A stretch of DNA of 64,000 nucleotides, taken from Macrostomum lignano. Lineage: Eukaryota. Positions 16,071 through 44,650 of the stretch are shown piece by piece (the stretch's first letter is position 1; every line of letters begins with the position of its first letter). The notes beneath the pieces were generated by a model. It ran no database searches, had not been told where the DNA came from, and was given only the letters and a program-made list of their open reading frames with translations. A program made the position numbers and the translations under genes. The stretch is from positions 1 to 64,000 of the forward strand of contig NIVC01000283.1 in the NCBI GenBank assembly GCA_002269645.1, read 5' to 3'.

Positions 16071-18445
16071 CAGTGAGTGCAGGTTTAGTGTCAGCATGAG
16101 TGCAGGTCTAGTGTCAGCATGAGTGCAGGTCTAGTGTCAGCATGAGTGCAGGTCTAGTGTCAGCATGAGTGCAGGTCTAGTGTCAGCATGAGTGCAGGTC
16201 TAGTGTCAGCATGAGTGCAGGTCTAGTGTCAGCATGAGTGCAGGTCTAGTGTCAGCATGAGTGCAGGTCTAGTGTCAGCATGAGTGCAGGTCTAGTGTCA
16301 GTGAGTGCAGGTCTAGTGTCAGCATGAGTGCAGGTCTAGTGTCAGCATGAGTGCAGGTCTAGTGTCAGTGAGTGCAGGTCTAGTGTCAGCATGAGTGCAG
16401 GTATAGTGTCAGCATGAGTGCAGGTATAGTGTCAGCATGAGTGCAGGTATAGTGTCAGCATGAGTGCAGGTCTAGTGTCAGTGAGTGAGTGAGTGCAGGT
16501 ATAGTGTCAGCATGAGTGCAGGTCTAGTGTCAGTGAGTGCAGGTCTAGTGTCAGTGAGTGCAGGTATAGTGTCAGCATGAGTGCAGGTCTAGTGTCAGCA
16601 TGAGTGCAGGTATAGTGTCAGCATGAGTGCAGGTCTAGTGTCAGTGAGTGAGTGAGTGCAGGTCTAGTGTCAGCATGAGTGCAGGTCTAGTGTCAGTGAG
16701 TGCAGGTCTAGTGTCAGTGAGTGCAGGTCTAGTGTCAGCATGAGTGCAGGTCTAGTGTCAGTGAGTGCAGGTCTAGTGTCAGTGAGTGCAGGTCTAGTGT
16801 CAGTGAGTGCAGGTCTAGTGTCAGTGAGTGCAGGTCTAGTGTCAGTGAGTGAGTGAATGCAGGTCTAGTGTCAGTGAGTGCAGGTCTAGTGTCAGCATGA
16901 GTGCAGGTCTAGTGTCAGCATGAGTGCAGGTCTAGTGTCAGCATGAGTGCAGGTCTAGTGTCAGCATGAGTGCAGGTCTAGTGTCAGTGAGTGCAGGTCT
17001 AGTGTCAGCATGAGTGCAGGTCTAGTGTCAGCATGAGTGCAGGTCTAGTGTCAGTGAGTGCAGGTCTAGTGTCAGCATGAGTGCAGGTATAGTGTCAGCA
17101 TGAGTGCAGGTCTAGTGTCAGTGAGTGCAGGTATAGTGTCAGCATGAGTGCAGGTATAGTGTCAGCATGAGTGCAGGTATAGTGTCAGCATGAGTGCAGG
17201 TCTAGTGTCAGTGAGTGAGTGAGTGCAGGTATAGTGTCAGCATGAGTGCAGGTCTAGTGTCAGTGAGTGCAGGTCTAGTGTCAGTGAGTGCAGGTATAGT
17301 GTCAGCATGAGTGCAGGTCTAGTGTCAGCATGAGTGCAGGTATAGTGTCAGCATGAGTGCAGGTCTAGTGTCAGTGAGTGCAGGTCTAGTGTCAGCATGA
17401 GTGCAGGTCTAGTGTCAGTGAGTGCAGGTCTAGTGTCAGTGAGTGCAGGTCTAGTGTCAGTGAGTGCAGGTCTAGTGTCAGTGAGTGCAGGTCTAGTGTC
17501 AGTGAGTGAGTGAGTGCAGGTCTAGTGTCAGCATGAGTGCAGGTCTAGTGTCAGTGAGTGCAGGTCTAGTGTCAGTGAGTGCAGGTCTAGTGTCAGTGAG
17601 TGCAGGTCTAGTGTCAGTGAGTGCAGGTCTAGTGTCAGTGAGTGAGTGAATGCAGGTCTAGTGTCAGTGAGTGCAGGTCTAGTGTCAGCATGAGTGCAGG
17701 TCTAGTGTCAGCATGAGTGCAGGTCTAGTGTCAGTGAGTGCAGGTCTAGTGTCAGTGAGTGAGTGAGTGCAGGTATAGTGTCAGCATGAGTGCAGGTCTA
17801 GTGTCAGTGAGTGCAGGTCTAGTGTCAGTGAGTGCAGGTATAGTGTCAGCATGAGTGCAGGTCTAGTGTCAGCATGAGTGCAGGTATAGTGTCAGCATGA
17901 GTGCAGGTCTAGTGTCAGTGAGTGCAGGTCTAGTGTCAGCATGAGTGCAGGTCTAGTGTCAGTGAGTGCAGGTCTAGTGTCAGTGAGTGCAGGTCTAGTG
18001 TCAGTGAGTGCAGGTCTAGTGTCAGTGAGTGCAGGTCTAGTGTCAGTGAGTGAGTGAGTGCAGGTCTAGTGTCAGCATGAGTGCAGGTCTAGTGTCAGTG
18101 AGTGCAGGTCTAGTGTCAGTGAGTGCAGGTCTAGTGTCAGTGAGTGCAGGTCTAGTGTCAGTGAGTGCAGGTCTAGTGTCAGTGAGTGAGTGAATGCAGG
18201 TCTAGTGTCAGTGAGTGCAGGTCTAGTGTCAGCATGAGTGCAGGTCTAGTGTCAGCATGAGTGCAGGTCTAGTGTCAGTGAGTGCAGGTCTAGTGTCAGT
18301 GAGTGCAGGTCTAGTGTCAGTGAGTGCAGGTCTAGTGTCAGCATGAGTGCAGGTCTAGTGTCAGCATGAGTGCAGGTCTAGTGTCAGTGAGTGCAGGTCT
18401 AGTGTCAGTGAGTGCAGGTCTAGTGTCAGTGAGTGCAGTTCTAGT
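16070..18445. repeat. 2.4-kb minisatellite mixing a 23-bp unit (gagtgcaggtctagtgtcagcat) and a shorter variant (gagtgcaggtctagtgtcagt)
   Basis: Visible units. Confidence 0.97.
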
Positions 18446-18662: not shown

Positions 18663-25390
<6,728 letters not shown>

Positions 25391-26994: not shown

Positions 26995-31328
<4,334 letters not shown>

Positions 31329-32138: not shown

Positions 32139-32576
<438 letters not shown>

Positions 32577-32614
32577 CTACTACCTTATAAGAACAAAGTT
32601 GAATAAATGGCAGA

Positions 32615-33095
32615 GGGAAGCAGAGTGTACGTTGGGCTAGAGGGAAGCCTCTGTACGTTGGGGGTAGAGGGAAGCCTCTGTACATTGGGGTAGAGGGAAG
32701 TCTCTGTACGTTGGGGGTAGAGGGAAGCCTCTTTACATTGGGGTAGAGGGAAGACACTGTACATTGGGGATAGAGGGAAGCCTCTGTACATTGGGGGTAG
32801 AGGGAAGCCTCTGTACGTTGGGGGTAGAGGGAAGCCTCTGTACGTTGGGGGTAGAGGGAAGCCTCTGTACGTTGGGGGTAGAGGGAAGCCTCTGTACATT
32901 GGGGTAGAGGGAAGCCTCTGTACGTTGGGGGTAGAGGGAAGCCTCTGTACATTGGGGTAGAGGGAAGACACTGTACATTGGGGATAGAGGGAAGCCTCTG
33001 TACGTTGGGGGTAGAGGGAAGACACTGTACATTGGGGGTAGTGGGAAGCCTATGTACATTGGGGGGTAGAGGGAAGCCTCTGTACATTGGGGTAG
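32615..33095. repeat. 26-27-bp minisatellite (agagggaagcctctgtacgttgggggt)n
   Basis: Visible units upstream of the ATP synthase c start. Confidence 0.95.
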
Positions 33096-33140: not shown

Positions 33141-33224
33141 CTAAATCAGACGATCAAGACGTCAAAGTCTAAGACATCTTCATGATTTGCGGATCAGATG
33201 TCCCTATCAGTGTCATCATATTGT
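33141..33224 (-). ncRNA. Box C/D snoRNA, SNORD74/snR64-like, diverged copy
   Basis: Minus strand: box C ATGATGA (33219-33213), guide CACTGATAGGGACAT, D' CTGA, C' ATGAAGA, box D CTGA (33149-33146). The guide is identical to the seven intronic copies while the rest has diverged. Confidence 0.8.
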
Positions 33225-33764: not shown

Positions 33765-36700
33765 TCACTGCAGTACAAGGCCGACCTGTCAATTAAAATG
33801 GAAAATTGACTGGTTATTAGCGAAATTATCCTTCAGAGCAGATATTGAAACATCAGTGGATGAGGAGATCGGTGAGTGAGAGGCAGACAGGTCAGGTCAA
33901 TCACGGTTTAGACAATTAGACTTGAAGTCTGTGACATCTTCAGAGTTTTTGTATCAGATGTCCCTATCAGTGTCATCATTGTGTCGGGAATTTTAACAGG
34001 TGGGATGGGGAGACAGGTGGGGATGGAGAGACAGGTGGAGATGGGGAGAGAGGTGGGGATGGGGAGACAGGTGGAGATGGGGAGACAGGTGGGATGGGGA
34101 GACAGGTGAGATGGGGAGACAGGTGGAGATGGAGAGACAGGTGGAGATGGGGAGACAGGTGGGGATGGGGAGACAGGTGGGGATGGGGAGGCAGGTGGGG
34201 ATGGGGAGACAGGTGGAGATGGGGAGACAGGTGGAGATGGGGAGACAGGTGGGGATGGGGAGACAGGTGGAGATGGGGAGACGGTTCAGACAATTAGACA
34301 TGAAGTCTGTGACATCTTCAGAGTTTTTGTATCAGATGTCCCTATCAGTGTCATCATTGTGTCAGGAATTTTAACAGGTGGGATGGGGAGACAGGTGAAG
34401 ATGGGGAGACAGGTGGAGATGGGGAGACAGGTGGTATGGGGAGACAGGTGAAGATGGGGAGACAGGTGGGATGGGGAGACAGGTGGAGATGGGGAGACAG
34501 GTGGGGATGGGGAGACAGGTGGAGATGGGGAGACAGGTGGGATGGGGAGACAGGTGATGATGGGGAGACAGGTGGGATGGGGAGACAGGTGGAGATGGGG
34601 AGACAGGTGGGATGGGGAGACAGGAGATGATGGGGAGACAGGTGGGATGGGGAGACAGGTGGAGATGGGGAGACAGGTGGGATGGGGAGACAGGTGGAGA
34701 TGGGGAGACAGGTGGGATGGGGAGACAGGAGATGATGGGGAGACAGGTGGGATGGGGAGACAGGTGGAGATGGGGAGACAGGTGGGATGGGGAGACAGGT
34801 GGGATGGGGAGACAGGTGGGATGGGGAGACAGGTGGGATGGGGAGACGGTTCAGACAATTAGACATGAAGTCTGTGACATCTTCAGAGTTTTTGTATCAG
34901 ATGTCCCTATCAGTGTCATCATTGTGTCGGGAATTTTAACATGTGGAGATGGGGAGAGAGGTGGAGATGGGGAGACAGGTGGAGATGGGGAGACAGGTGG
35001 TATGGGGAGACAGGTGAAGATGGGGAGACAGGTGGGATGGGGAGACAGGTGGAGATGGGGAGACAGGTGGGATGGGGAGACAGGTGGGATGGGGAGACAG
35101 GTGGAGATGGGGAGACAGGTGGAGATGGGGAGACAGGTGGGATGGGGAGACAGGTGGAGATGGGGAGACGGTTCAGACAATTAGACTTGAAGTCTGTGAC
35201 ATCTTCAGAGTTTTTGGATCAGATGTCCCTATCAGTGTCATCATTGTGTCGGGAATTTTAACAGGTGGGATGGGGAGACAGGTGGGATGGGGAGACAGGT
35301 GGGTGGGACGTGGAGAGAGGTGGGATGGAGAGACAGGTGGATGGGGAGAGAGGTGGGATGGAGAGACAGGTTGGATGGGGAGAGAGGTGGGATGGAGAGA
35401 CAGGTTGGATGGGGAGAGAGGTGGGATGGAGAGACAGGTTGGATGGGGATAGAGGTGGGATGGAGAGACAGGTTGGATGGGGAGACAGGTGGGGATGGGA
35501 GACGGTTCAGACAATTAGACTTGAAGTCTGTGACATCTTCAGAGTTTTTGTATCAGATGTCCCTATCAGTGTCATCATTGTGTCGGGAATTTTAACAGGT
35601 GGGATGGGGAGACAGGTGGGATGGGGAGACGGGTGGGGATGGAGAGACAGGTGGTATGGGGAGACAGGTGAAGATGGGGAGACAGGTGGGATGGGGAGAC
35701 AGGTGGAGATGGGGAGACAGGTGGGATGGGGAGACAGGTGGGATGGGGAGACAGGTGGAGATGGGGAGACAGGTGGGATGGGGAGACAGGTTCAGACAAT
35801 TAGACATGAAGTCTGTGACATCTTCAGAGTTTTTGTATCAGATGTCCCTATCAGTGTCATCATTGTGTCGGGAATTTTAACATGTGGAGATGGGGAGAGA
35901 GGTGGAGATGGGGAGACAGGTGGAGATGGGGAGACAGGTGGTATGGGGAGACAGGTGAAGATGGGGAGACATGTGGGATGGGGAGACAGGTGGGATGGGG
36001 AGACAGGTGGGATGGGGAGACAGGTGGAGATGGGGAGACAGGTGGAGATGGGGAGACAGGTGGGATGGGGAGACAGGTGGGATGGGGAGACAGGTGGAGA
36101 TGGGGAGACAGGTGGAGATGGGGAGACAGGTGGGATGGGGAGACAGGTGGAGATGGGGAGACGGTTCAGACAATTAGACTTGAAGTCTGTGACATCTTCA
36201 GAGTTTTTGGATCAGATGTCCCTATCAGTGTCATCATTGTGTCAGGATTTTAAATGTAGGGTTAGGGAGCGACATTGTGGGGATGGGGAGACAGGTGAGG
36301 GTGGGGAAACAGTTGAGGAGATAAACGAGACAAAACTACAAACCTCCTCGGCCTTCATATCTGAGCATCTCCAGTTGTACAGGTAATAGTGCAGATAGCC
36401 GTCTCCGGCGCCGAATTTGAGTTCGCTAAGAAACTGTTTATTCTCCATTAGGTCAAGACAGTTGACAACATCAAATCCGGTACGTTTGGCTTGAATTAGC
36501 AGGTCGCGCATCAAGTCAATCCAGGTCATTGAGCCGGCTACATTGTAGAAACAGTAGGCGGCGAACAGTGTCTTGTGATTCGGATTGTTGATCACAGACG
36601 AGGGCAGACAGTAGAATGAGGCGAAGTCCGACACCCGGTTGCTGTCGGTCGGGTCTAGGCAGACAAAGGACTGCACAATGCCCTCGCGTGGAGTGAACCA

Positions 36701-39169
36701 GTGGGCAAACTCCTTCTCTGGAGGGTAGTTGGGTTCGCAGTGAGATGATAGCGAGTGCAGCGATCTGACATCTTTACTGACACTAACTTTGGCTGGCCTG
36801 ACATTAACTTTAACTGTTCTGACACTAACTAAGACAGTATAAAACTATAAAAGCAGAAAAAACAATATCAGAAAACTTCACACCGTCAAAAACAGGCGCC
36901 AACTGAAAGCTTTCCAAATACTTGCTGAGCAGTTGAAATGCCTGTTTTGTGTGCTTCGGCTGCATCAACTGGAAGCTGGAATTCTTGGGCTGGTCTGGCA
37001 GCTTGTAAAGCTTGATGGCTCGGGCCATAGTCATGTTGCGCTGCAGAGAGCTGAACTGGCACTCCACCAGCTTGCGCGGGTTCAGAGACCTGCGGATGGG
37101 AGAGTGGGGCATTGCGGGTCACACTGACACTGGGGATCTTGGAGGGTCGATTGTCTGGTCTAGAAACTGAGGATCTGGGAAGCTGGCCCAGCAACTGAGG
37201 ATCTGGGAGGCTGGCCCAGCAACCGAGGATCTGGGAAGCTGGCCCAGCAACCGAGGATCTGGGAAGCTGGCCCAGCAACCGAGGATCTGGGAGGCTGCCC
37301 CAGCAACTGGGGATCTGGGAGCGTGGGAGGCTGGCCCAGCAACTGAGGATCTGGGAGGCTGGTGGACCAGCAACTGAGGATCTGGGAGGCTGGCCCAGCA
37401 ACTGGGGATCTGGGAGGCTGGCCCAGCAACTGAGGATCTGGGAAGCTGGCGCAGCAACTGAGGATCTGGGAGGCTGGTGGCCCAGCAACTGAGGATCTGG
37501 GAGGCTGGCGCAGCAACTGAGGATCCGGTCACCCACCTGTGATAGTAGCGGCACGTGGCCACAGGCTTGGGCAGCACCACGCCGCCGGTGTACACGGCCT
37601 GAAACCTGCCGGTGAGGTTCACCCTCCTGGTGATCTCCTTGATCAGCACGGGCGCCACCCGTTTGCCTCGCAGCCGCTTGTGGACGCACAGGAAATTAAT
37701 TTCGACCATTTCTACCCGACGGTCGCGAACTCGAATCCCAGCCGGTATGGCGCTGATGAAGCCGACCAGCTTCCTGTTGCTGCGCACCCGAACTCCGACG
37801 TGCCAGTCAGAGCGCCACCCAGGCGGCTGCAGAGCCCAACGGAGGAACGCGGGCGAATAGTCGAATCTGATTGGTTCGATAAAACAAATTTTGCGAGCAC
37901 TTTTACTTCAACAGATTAAGCTGAACGGCTGACACAACAATATGATTTAACAATCATTAAATTAAAAATTAAAATTCATCATTTTGAAATCTACCAGGGT
38001 TATCAGGACTTAGATGCTTTAATGTAACAATCCTAAGGATAGAAATTTAGTAAATTAGAAGATAAATGAGGCAAGATTATTATCGCCACAAATTATTACG
38101 CTTATAGGAAGAGATTCTTATCCAAAGTATCCATCATGATGGGATTCTAATACCCATAGATCTTTATGATAGGATTCTAATTCCTACAGATAATTAGGAT
38201 GGGACTCTATCCCCACAACTCTTCATGATGGGATTCTAATCCCCACATATAAATAAGATGGGACTTTATCCCAACAGATCTTCATTATAGGATTCTAATC
38301 CCCACAGATCTTCATGATGGGATTCTAATCCCCACAGATCTTCATGATGGGATTCTAATCCCCACAGATCATCACGATGGGATTCTAATCCCCACAGATC
38401 TTCACGATGGGATTCTAATCCCCACAGATCTTCATGATGGGATTCTAATCCCCACAGATCATCACGATGGGATTCTAATCCCCACAGATCTTCACGATGG
38501 GATTCTAATCCCCACAGATCTTCATGATGGGATTCTAATCCCCACAGATCTTTATGATGGGATTCTAATCCCCACAACTCTTTATGAAGGGTTTCTAATC
38601 CCCACAGATTCTTATGGTTTGATTCTAAACCCGAAGAATGTTTTAACTGACTCTAATCCTTACAGATCATTAGGATGAAATTAAATTTTTTCTAAGAGTA
38701 TAGCTCACCTAAACAGCTCGTCCTCATCCTCCACATAGTTCTCATTAAGCAAAGTGTACAGCTCTTGCAATTGAGCATCGTTTTGCAGGTCAACTTCGCT
38801 CCAATCAAACATATTGGGTATATCGTAGGGCGTCTGTCTGATCTGGTCTTTAGGCTTGTCCTCTTCAATTGGCTCGCTAATTGGTTTGGATTCAGTGGTG
38901 AATCCCTGTGGCACAGGCTGGGTGGCCCAGAATTTGTAGTCTCTCTGTTTGGCTTCATCTAAACGTCGTGGCGCGCTGGTGGAAGCTGAACCCGAAGCCG
39001 CTGCAGCAGCCGCAGCAGCAGCAGCAGAAGAGGGAGCCACTCGAAGTGCATTCATACTCTCAGCTAGACTGCCACCCTTAGCACCAGATGATTGCTGCTG
39101 CTGAGGAGACTTGCTTTGTGAACCTGATGCTCCATCTTTGTTGTCAGAGTTGCCTTGGTCTCCAGACAT
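33765..39169 (-). CDS. NMT: Glycylpeptide N-tetradecanoyltransferase, 463 aa; exons 39169-38709, 37866-37537, 37089-36884, 36717-36344, 33785-33765
   Basis: [61 protein letters not shown] and terminal VGLVLQ*; GT-AG introns in phase (1392 nt). Confidence 0.97.
33903..33985 (-). ncRNA. Box C/D snoRNA array copy 1 (SNORD74-like); box D mutated to CTAA
   Basis: Box C 33979-33973 with guide, D' and C' intact; D position 33911-33908 reads CTAA. Confidence 0.6.
34281..34363 (-). ncRNA. Box C/D snoRNA array copy 2 (SNORD74-like)
   Basis: Box C 34357-34351, GATAGGGACAT-CTGA, C' CTGAAGA, box D 34289-34286. Confidence 0.8.
34846..34928 (-). ncRNA. Box C/D snoRNA array copy 3 (SNORD74-like)
   Basis: Box C 34922-34916, box D 34854-34851, guide intact. 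Confidence 0.8.
35168..35250 (-). ncRNA. Box C/D snoRNA array copy 4 (SNORD74-like)
   Basis: Box C 35244-35238, box D 35176-35173, guide intact. Confidence 0.8.
35502..35584 (-). ncRNA. Box C/D snoRNA array copy 5 (SNORD74-like)
   Basis: Box C 35578-35572, box D 35510-35507, guide intact. Confidence 0.8.
35787..35869 (-). ncRNA. Box C/D snoRNA array copy 6 (SNORD74-like)
   Basis: Box C 35863-35857, box D 35795-35792, guide intact. Confidence 0.8.
36161..36243 (-). ncRNA. Box C/D snoRNA array copy 7 (SNORD74-like)
   Basis: Box C 36237-36231, box D 36169-36166, guide intact. Confidence 0.8.
37165..37525. repeat. ~28-bp minisatellite in NMT intron 2, same family and orientation as in ELOVL intron 3
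   Basis: Shared unit gggaggctggcccagcaactgaggatct. Confidence 0.95.
38130..38640. repeat. 30-bp minisatellite (gggattctaatccccacagatcttcatgat)n in NMT intron 1
   Basis: Visible units, degenerate at both edges. Confidence 0.95.
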
Positions 39170-43800: not shown

Positions 43801-44650
43801 ATCCAGGGAACGCCCAGGACTGAGAGAATAATATTAGGGAAAGTATAGGAATATAATAGACAGTGCTATTAGACCGCTCAGGCCAGAAAAGTACAATAGA
43901 AGTTCATACGCTACCAATAGAAGTACATACGCTACCAATAGAAGTACATGCGCTACCAGTAGAAAGACAATTAATAACCAGTAGAATTGTTAAGGAGAAA
44001 TAGCTTTATTACAACTTTGGTGGCAGCTAGTAAGGCTAGCAAAAGGAATAATTAAGAGCCCTACAACAATTTTATTTCTTTATTATTATAATTGAATTGT
44101 AACTATGGGTATCTACTGTGCTATTTTCAAAATATAATGGTAATAATATATTTAATAATACTTGAATGTTTCTTGGTCATGTCCAAAAAATATCATAGTG
44201 TCTATTGCATGAAAAATCAAGCTTACTTGTGACTGTTTCTTTTTTATAGTTTCTATTCTTTGCCTTGTCTTATAACTAATACAAGAATGCATACTGCTAA
44301 GAGAAACTAGGGATAAATTGCTATTGTGTCATGTCATGTTACAAATATATGCACAATGGTAGCAGATTACTAAATTTACAGTGAAGTCTTGGCTTTTAAA
44401 ACAGTGGCACTTTAGTGGCTGAAGGGTGGCATTGCAGTGTGGCTGAAGGGTGGCACTGCAGTGGCTGAAGGGTGGCACTGCAGTGGCTGAAGGGTGGCAC
44501 TGCAGTGGCTAAAGGGTGGCACTGCAGTGGCTGAAGGGTGGCACTGCATTGGCTGGCCACCATTGGGCCACCCTCGGCTCCCGAGACAAAACCTCCGGTG
44601 GTCCACTGGTGGCTGGCCATTGGTGGGCCATTGGTGGCTTGCACACTGGG
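40847..44650. mobile_element. Non-autonomous TIR DNA transposon (~3.8 kb), probably CMC/EnSpm-like
   Basis: Left end cccagtgcgtgagccaccattggg; reverse complement of the right end cccagtgtgcaagccaccaatggc. TA on both flanks (atcTA|..|TAgag), subterminal repeats (22-bp array at 44405-44550), no transposase ORF. Confidence 0.75.
41793..42019. mobile_element. ~230-bp foldback element (MITE-like) nested in the 40847-44650 element
   Basis: Long inverted arms ttcaattttgatcaaagtccagttctaaaaaa..ttcagactaggg and their reverse complement. Confidence 0.7.

Follow-up and report, generated by a model that had tools for sequence, protein, structure and literature searches.

The window analysed here is a 64,000-nt stretch of the genome of the flatworm Macrostomum lignano (contig NIVC01000283.1, positions 1 to 64,000, assembly GCA_002269645.1). 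On its minus strand lies a gene for N-myristoyltransferase (NMT), the last intron of which holds seven tandem copies of a unit that is probably a box C/D small nucleolar RNA (snoRNA) gene. The NMT model has five exons (39169-38709, 37866-37537, 37089-36884, 36717-36344 and 33785-33765; 1392 nt) separated by GT-AG introns. Its spliced product agrees with PAA86339.1, the annotated M. lignano enzyme, throughout the 463 residues apart from one guessed junction residue, and the annotated NMT gene on this contig covers the same 5405-bp span. An initial annotation of the sequence had already given the right bounds for intron 4, the seven repeats with their box D positions, and a 17-18-bp G-rich minisatellite between them, which Tandem Repeats Finder (TRF) confirmed. 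The features of this intron are as follows.

36344..36717, minus strand: NMT exon 4, from the gene model
33786..36343, minus strand: NMT intron 4, the last coding intron and host of the array, 2558 nt, GTTTGT...TTGACAG
36166..36237, minus strand: snoRNA unit c1, with the ATCC loop variant, starting 106 nt past the 5' splice site
35792..35863, minus strand: snoRNA unit c2, with the CATG hairpin-loop variant
35507..35578, minus strand: snoRNA unit c3, with the consensus sequence and the best Rfam score (Afu_335, 27.5 bits)
35173..35244, minus strand: snoRNA unit c4, with the ATCC variant
34851..34922, minus strand: snoRNA unit c5, with the CATG variant
34286..34357, minus strand: snoRNA unit c6, with the CATG variant, the last with all boxes intact, its box D ending 500 nt from the 3' splice site
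33908..33979, minus strand: unit c7, with box D mutated to CTAA, ending 122 nt from the 3' splice site
33996..36162, no strand assigned: 17/18-bp minisatellite (TRF, 122 copies, plus-strand consensus ACAGGTGGGATGGGGAG), forming six internal spacers of 213-493 nt
33765..33785, minus strand: coding part of the last NMT exon, VGLVLQ and stop

All seven units are in sense orientation to NMT, and each spans 72 nt, boxes C and D included. Read as RNA, a unit runs from box C (AUGAUGA) through a guide of 15 nt (CACUGAUAGGGACAU), box D' (CUGA), an 11-nt loop, UGAAGAUGUC, an AGAC..GUCU hairpin and AAUUGU to box D (CUGA), with the hairpin occupying the place of a second guide. The repeated block also takes in an 18-nt leader (GUUAAAAUUCCCGACACA) and a 4-nt trailer, both conserved. 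The units are 97-100% identical to one another, and variants that mark them lie in the D' loop (UAC/UCC; UACAAAAACUC) and the hairpin (CAAG/CAUG). The minus strand of the window contains the 26-nt string of box C, guide and D' (ATGATGACACTGATAGGGACATCTGA) eight times, with 0 expected from 100 dinucleotide-preserving shuffles, so that chance is excluded.

Box C of the form RUGAUGA together with box D CUGA is found in c1 to c6 and in an eighth, 74-nt copy described below (c8). The CUAA of c7 lowers the count of units with intact boxes to six of the seven in the intron, and c7 is likely a pseudogene in this locus. D' is exactly CUGA. C' departs from its consensus by one mismatch in either of two registers, UGAAGA, or AGAUGU when the unit is aligned to the Rfam family Afu_335. 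The D'/C' pair is closed by a GACAUC/GAUGUC stem that dominates the centroid fold, as had been anticipated from GACAT/ATGTC complementarity. The order C, D', C', D over 72 nt on the host strand thus stands as first described, apart from the mutated box D of c7 and the ambiguous C'.

No AG dinucleotide occurs on the transcribed strand of the six internal spacers. There can thus be no cryptic 3' splice site or mini-exon between units, and we rejected hidden mini-exons as a way of separating them; all seven share one intron. In arrangement the locus is therefore an intronic cluster, with at least two sense snoRNA genes in a single spliceosomal intron and no exon between them. On the transcribed strand the minisatellite reads CACCUGUCUCCCCAUC(C/UC), with 54-56% C and 5-6% G.

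The guide points to a conserved target. Counting upstream from D', nucleotides 2-11 of the guide are perfectly complementary to the conserved large subunit (LSU) rRNA sequence UGUCCCUAUC. In box C/D RNAs the methylated residue pairs with the fifth guide position upstream of box D or D', so the predicted residue is the first C of CCC. The guide carries an element of at least 10 nt that ends 1 nt before D', is complementary to LSU UGUCCCUA(U/C)C and places the first C of CCC at the fifth position, as in the snR64/U74 family. It is identical to the consensus of Afu_335 and of Me28S-Cm2645, and agrees with the 10-bp, zero-mismatch D' duplex of CD36, an intronic snoRNA of Neurospora crassa that corresponds to snR64 of both yeasts, snoR44 of Arabidopsis and human U74 (PMC2780460). 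U74/SNORD74 guides methylation of human 28S Cm3820, a site within CACUGUCCCUACC that was assayed at C3820 with a primer giving GATTCCCACTGTCCCTACC (PMC6856654). The target site is thus established in human, and for fly and fungi it is deduced; neither the window nor the other loci analysed contain rDNA.

We consider it probable that the units are genuine box C/D snoRNA genes, the flatworm counterpart by guide of snR64/snoR44/U74/Me28S-Cm2645/Afu_335, amplified as an intronic array. The core C/D proteins would assemble on each unit, guide positions 2-11 would pair with the conserved LSU segment, and fibrillarin would 2'-O-methylate the first C of CCC. From the primary sequence we infer expression, assembly into a small nucleolar ribonucleoprotein (snoRNP), methylation and the route of processing. 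Two forms of the gene would exist, the homogeneous array in the last NMT intron and a single copy outside it.

This single copy had been overlooked in the initial annotation, as had the mutated box D of c7; the positions given there for the seven intronic units were right.

33146..33219, minus strand: c8, a divergent paralogue of 74 nt, with box C, guide and D' as in the array

It lies between NMT and the ATP synthase subunit c gene (ATP5G), 545 nt downstream of the NMT stop and 120 nt downstream of the second and last AATAAA. Compared with the array consensus, c8 is identical at 26/26 positions of box C, guide and D' and at 36/49 positions (73%) in the rest of the body, with flanks at random level. 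The homology stops at the ends of box C and box D, which are the ends of a mature C/D RNA. The matches outside the 26-nt segment are located in the C' region, box D, the AGAC/GUCU hairpin and, within the closing stem, the GAUGUC strand. At 27% divergence, 26 unchanged sites have a probability of ~3e-4. Two segments, CCGCAAAUCA and UUGAUCGU, are specific to c8. The stretch before box D differs from the array by substitutions and an indel (AAUUGU in the array, GAUCGU in c8) and follows the conserved AGAC/GUCU hairpin, so there is no conserved second guide, and we rejected such a guide upstream of box D.

On its sequence, c8 is the best internal evidence for selection. It appears to be an old paralogue, and its conservation is evidence that selection acts, or acted until recently, on the snoRNA. 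Recent duplication has left the array units too alike for their near-identity to inform on function by itself. Box C and guide are invariant in all of the 25 intronic units that three loci contain, with about 10 independent variants in the other 50 nt, a contrast that is marginally significant and confounded by shared ancestry.

The three loci are the window and two more contigs of the same assembly that carry the NMT-ATP5G-ELO locus. The array has 7 units in the window, 13 in the second locus (L002) and 5 in the third (L003), and each of the three has a single c8 in the corresponding place. The first unit shares a unique upstream flank and the last unit a unique downstream flank in every locus, with interiors that differ. 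It follows that the array is older than the divergence of these loci and that its length has changed since then. The 17-mer minisatellite motif was found in the NMT array intron only, in each of them. Within the window, the block c1-spacer-c2 is 99.5% identical to the block c4-spacer-c5, whole-repeat indels apart, which on sequence grounds is the signature of a recent exchange of about 1 kb between misaligned copies. Amplification by unequal crossing-over, as first proposed, fits both this identity and the 5, 7 and 13 units of the sister loci. The array would have grown and shrunk by such exchange within the 17/18-bp minisatellite. In the array intron (33786-36343), 9 G-quadruplex-like motifs lie on the G-rich plus strand, the template of NMT, and 0 on the transcribed strand; these may add to array instability. 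No locus is on record for a 459-aa NMT variant that is possibly from an older, independent assembly.

A single snoRNA with its minisatellite might instead have been expanded or mis-joined by the long-read assembler, since repeats of this kind were error-prone in early PacBio assemblies. Arrays of 13 and 5 units at two other loci show that this is not an expansion on a single contig and that copy number is unstable. The three contigs have conserved NMT-ATP5G-ELO synteny, unit variants and spacer lengths of their own, and orthologous first and last units in common, while the introns span just 2-4 kb, well inside single long reads. We regard an assembly artefact as very improbable.

Several observations weigh against reading the units as functional genes. 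At gathering thresholds, Rfam gave no match to any family in the whole window, SNORD74 and snR64 included; the matches obtained are all sub-threshold. A single array unit compared with 4227 Rfam families, lower-scoring matches within a clan being suppressed, had as its top match the Aspergillus fumigatus family Afu_335 (RF01513; 27.5 bits, E 0.002, gathering score 50), followed by the Drosophila family snoMe28S-Cm2645 (RF00530; 24 bits, E 0.003, gathering score 48); for c8 the same two families scored 26.9 and 21.6 bits. With 24-27.5 bits, about half the gathering scores of 48-50, the unit is not a formal member of RF00530 or RF01513. The folding energy of a unit is at shuffle level (z ~0). 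The terminal stem at boxes C and D is weak, with 3 bp (GAC/GUC) across a 3x3 internal loop, and 2 bp in c8. The near-identity of the array units reflects recent duplication. Boxes are damaged in individual copies: besides box D of c7, D' is CTAA in unit 4 of L003, and the first unit of both L002 and L003 reads UGGAGA. In c8 of L002 (17271-17344) a G-to-A change lies mid-guide (GAUAGAGACA), adjoining the predicted methylation position. Finally, no endonuclease signal is visible in the spacer sequence, and no cut site could be identified there.

Taken at their strongest, the low Rfam scores and unremarkable thermodynamic stability would fit a repeat or transposon fragment with C/D-like motifs arising by chance. 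Formal Rfam failure is common for short, fast-evolving C/D RNAs. The alignments to both families rest on box C, GAUAGGGACAUCUGAU and box D, so the resemblance to SNORD74/snR64 claimed at the outset holds for the D' guide, common to Me28S-Cm2645 and Afu_335, and has no gathering-level score behind it. The four boxes stand in canonical order and spacing, and the 10-nt guide is identical to that of a pan-eukaryotic family. Conservation between c8 and the array is confined exactly to the body from box C to box D and is perfect over the guide. The unit turned up nowhere else in the 64 kb or in the two 25-kb sister loci. A chance repeat is, in our judgement, scarcely credible, slightly less so even than an assembly error. 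A protein database search with an open reading frame running through a unit gave no candidate, and the NMT transcript of a related species (81% identity) contained no snoRNA, as expected of a spliced mRNA.

A permissive Rfam scan of the whole window gave two matches only, tsr1 (22127-22704, plus strand, 46 bits, gathering score 235) and mir-4529 (44544-44625, plus strand, 30.5 bits, gathering score 88). Both lie inside tandem-repeat arrays, look like repeat artefacts and were rejected as spurious.

A metagenome scan returned 21 unrelated eukaryotic contigs, with a GC content of 24-59%, that carry units of 55-90 nt beginning with this box C-guide-D' module and ending in CUGA; the module is thus widespread. 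The contigs were picked by that pattern itself, which would make a covariance model built on them a circular test. Their terminal stems have 4-6 bp. Five of them (L007, L009, L010, L014 and L020) carry near-identical snoRNA orthologues with a clean 6-bp terminal stem (AGCACA/UGUGCU), unlike the weak stem of M. lignano, and seem to represent a single group of related organisms.

The lesions bring in a more serious alternative, in which the array is mostly a silent by-product. A mature snoRNA would come only from c8, with or without one or two array units, and the intronic copies would have hitch-hiked on an unstable minisatellite, would be inefficiently freed from an intron with many units and would be drifting to pseudogenes. 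Minisatellite expansion is the norm in this genomic region, with tandem repeats making up 37% of the window; box-disrupting variants occur in 4/25 intronic units, including the window unit best placed by the 3' splice site; and the terminal stem is weak. Animals mostly have one snoRNA per intron (PMC11028025), and copy number varies freely (5, 7, 13), as it would in a neutral array. Against this, box C and guide are untouched in all 25 intronic units where other positions vary. The array is also older than the split of the three loci and retained in all of them, and the guide mutation sits in c8 of L002, not in an array. Intronic clusters of rice and Drosophila are productively processed (PMC2780460). 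We hold a largely silent array to be possible and the less probable account. The mutated c8 guide belongs to L002, whose intronic array, with 13 units, is the largest of the three. The positional counterpart of c7 in L002 and L003, their last unit, has CTGA as box D, with the preceding 4 nt (AATT) deleted. The lesions in individual copies suggest, from their distribution in the sequence, relaxed constraint through redundancy.

If the units are functional snoRNA genes, the array has to be processed from one NMT intron, of which the units would be transcribed as a part. In animals one snoRNA per intron is the rule, freed by debranching and exonuclease trimming (PMC11028025). With all units in the same intron, the release of internal ones would need endonucleolytic cleavage. 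Cuts would fall in the single-stranded, C-rich spacers, followed by exonuclease trimming down to the snoRNP. Yeast polycistrons use double-stranded RNase III-type sites. The spacers are G-poor and cannot form sites of this type. The unit closest to the 3' splice site, at 122 nt, is c7 with its dead box D, and the closest intact unit is 500 nt off. Together with the weak terminal stem, this arrangement would argue for caution on processing efficiency.

Alternatively, the intron might mainly give long snoRNA-capped RNAs, similar to sno-lncRNAs or carrying several snoRNPs per strand, with exonucleases stopping at the outermost units. Such a stable C-rich repeat RNA could sequester proteins that bind poly(C) or CU, or affect NMT in cis. 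Long RNAs with snoRNA ends can arise where an intron holds two snoRNAs, and mammalian introns of this type give sno-lncRNAs whose internal sequence binds proteins (PMC11028025). The spacers here (213-493 nt, 55% C, 6% G, AG-free) have almost no capacity for structure and no evident endonuclease or splice signal between units. On the other side, sno-lncRNAs are known from mammals only, and the spacer is a fast-evolving minisatellite that differs in length between loci, which argues against a constrained function. Long RNAs would also be compatible with normal snoRNA output. As the main product of the intron we find them unlikely.

A related proposal follows from the same AG-free, C-rich intron shared by all units, which may give stable snoRNP-capped repeat RNAs. 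The intron might, besides snoRNAs, yield such RNAs as flatworm sno-lncRNAs, make removal of the last intron rate-limiting, or both, with array length tuning the amount of C-rich decoy and of active NMT. This we consider a long shot, somewhat more doubtful still than long RNAs as the main product. Retention of intron 4 would swap VGLVLQ and stop (33765-33785) for a 33-residue tail and stop (region 36242-36676, minus strand). The C-terminal carboxylate of NMT serves as catalytic base. Splicing of the repeat-laden last intron would then be needed for active NMT.

A second route of processing may apply to c8, given its position beside the next gene on the same strand.

32612..33092, no strand assigned: unrelated 27-bp minisatellite between c8 and ATP5G (TRF)
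32511..32516, minus strand: TTTCAG, candidate spliced-leader trans-splice acceptor of ATP5G, fitting [T/C]TNCAG (PMC8629364)

ATP5G is intronless (coding sequence 32486-32139), and its annotated coding sequence starts 8 codons further upstream, right after TTTCAG. The box D end of c8 is 635 nt upstream of this TTTCAG, of which 481 nt are the 27-bp minisatellite and 154 nt are non-repeat. In M. lignano 30% of genes are trans-spliced and 15% lie in operons, with [T/C]TNCAG as acceptor and intercistronic distances inflated by repeats (PMC8629364). Adjusted for repeats, the interval that separates the ATP5G TTTCAG from the last poly(A) signal of NMT is ~350 nt, inside the 1-kb operon criterion of the same study. 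If NMT and ATP5G are co-transcribed, c8 would lie in intercistronic RNA, from which trimming at both ends could free it once 3'-end cleavage and trans-splicing have taken place, and judging by its location it may thus be made by another route than the array. NMT, ATP5G, ELO and a Fumble/PanK homologue are all on the minus strand at short repeat-adjusted distances, and for this reason the four form a possible operon.

The start of ATP5G differs between loci. The window reads aaatTTCAG|TTCAAAAGTG and the sister loci read aaatGCATG|TTCAAAAGTG (L002 ~17736-17741, L003 ~16003-16008), with 4/5 bases differing in a cluster in loci that are otherwise ~98-99% identical. In M. lignano the spliced leader, …TTATTGCATG, has GCATG as its 3' end (PMC8629364). 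By sequence, the difference could be a trace of gene conversion or of retro-insertion from a trans-spliced cDNA.

The 64-kb window as a whole is rich in repeats, with 31 micro- and minisatellite arrays covering ~37% of it. Those longer than 2 kb include arrays of TAGA, of a 23/44-bp unit and of a 10-bp unit. One 28-bp minisatellite (AACTGAGGATCTGGGAGGCTGGCCCAGC) is present, identically oriented, both in NMT intron 2 (37165-37525) and ~9 kb away in the ELO-family gene (27291-28072), which shows that minisatellite families are scattered and not just local.

In terms of function, the gene described here would be the flatworm version, as expected, of a methylation guide that is ancient and near-universal; it reveals no new kind of RNA and no new mechanism. 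Its organisation as an intronic snoRNA gene cluster is a known arrangement, unusual but not unprecedented for an animal. The distinctive points are a homogeneous array of a single gene, its interleaving with a minisatellite, a copy number that varies between sister loci, and an old single-copy paralogue adjoining it. A limited literature search found descriptions neither of M. lignano snoRNAs nor of any snoRNA array set within a minisatellite. The locus provides a well-supported M. lignano snoRNA with a predicted rRNA target, and shows that minisatellite instability is able to amplify a small-RNA gene. It is also a natural experiment on the animal rule of one snoRNA per intron, with the same gene single outside the intron and in arrays of 5, 7 and 13 units inside it, in one genome. 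Copy-specific variants would let expressed units be told apart. With transgenesis and RNAi available, M. lignano is a tractable test case for the release of internal snoRNAs from a multi-unit intron, or for sno-lncRNA-type products.

Among known systems, several offer partial parallels. The intronic clusters of rice and Drosophila melanogaster, as far as described in PMC2780460 and in Huang 2004 and 2005 as cited in PMC5932544, also have several co-transcribed snoRNA genes in one host intron. Set against what these sources describe, the M. lignano array consists of copies of one gene, has pure minisatellite spacers and a copy number that varies between sister loci, and belongs to a flatworm. 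Its host, NMT, is a protein-coding gene unrelated to ribosome biogenesis, again relative to the clusters as those sources present them.

Tandem amplification of one C/D snoRNA is also seen in SNORD115 and SNORD116 of mammals. There, every repeat has an exon and each snoRNA its own intron, whereas the AG-free spacers of M. lignano leave no room for exons. One metagenome contig (L011, 59% GC) has the same guide in two copies 365 nt apart, each repeat with an exon (ttgcag|exon|gtacgt) and each snoRNA in its own intron. Over 5869-6526 on the minus strand, each intron holds the same-guide snoRNA, then a second C/D-like element (GATGATGCG…ATCAGA), and microsatellites. In its sequence layout this contig resembles a small SNORD116-style array. 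The sno-lncRNAs of the Prader-Willi region, SLERT and LNC-SNO49AB share with the array the presence of more than one snoRNA per intron, the precondition for snoRNA-ended RNAs (PMC11028025). The array has seven units rather than two and a simple C-rich repeat as internal sequence.

The closest relatives by guide are those of the snR64/snoR44/U74/CD36 family. Like the array, they have a D' guide that forms a 10-bp duplex with LSU UGUCCCUA(U/C)C and targets the first C of CCC, human 28S Cm3820 (PMC2780460; PMC6856654). They too lack a conserved second guide, and are intronic in N. crassa and in human (GAS5). No sequence can be aligned with M. lignano outside the boxes and guide. The human U74 guide is UAGGGACAU after GG (target UACC), that of M. 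lignano GAUAGGGACAU (target UAUC). With RF00530 (clan CL00069) and RF01513 the array aligns at box C, GAUAGGGACAUCUGAU and box D, and the 3' halves do not align; Afu_335 also has the ACAUC/GAUGU pairing that closes D'/C'. Genes of the snR64/U74 family are single-copy, one per intron, in contrast to the 5-13 copies in one intron and the separate paralogue of M. lignano.

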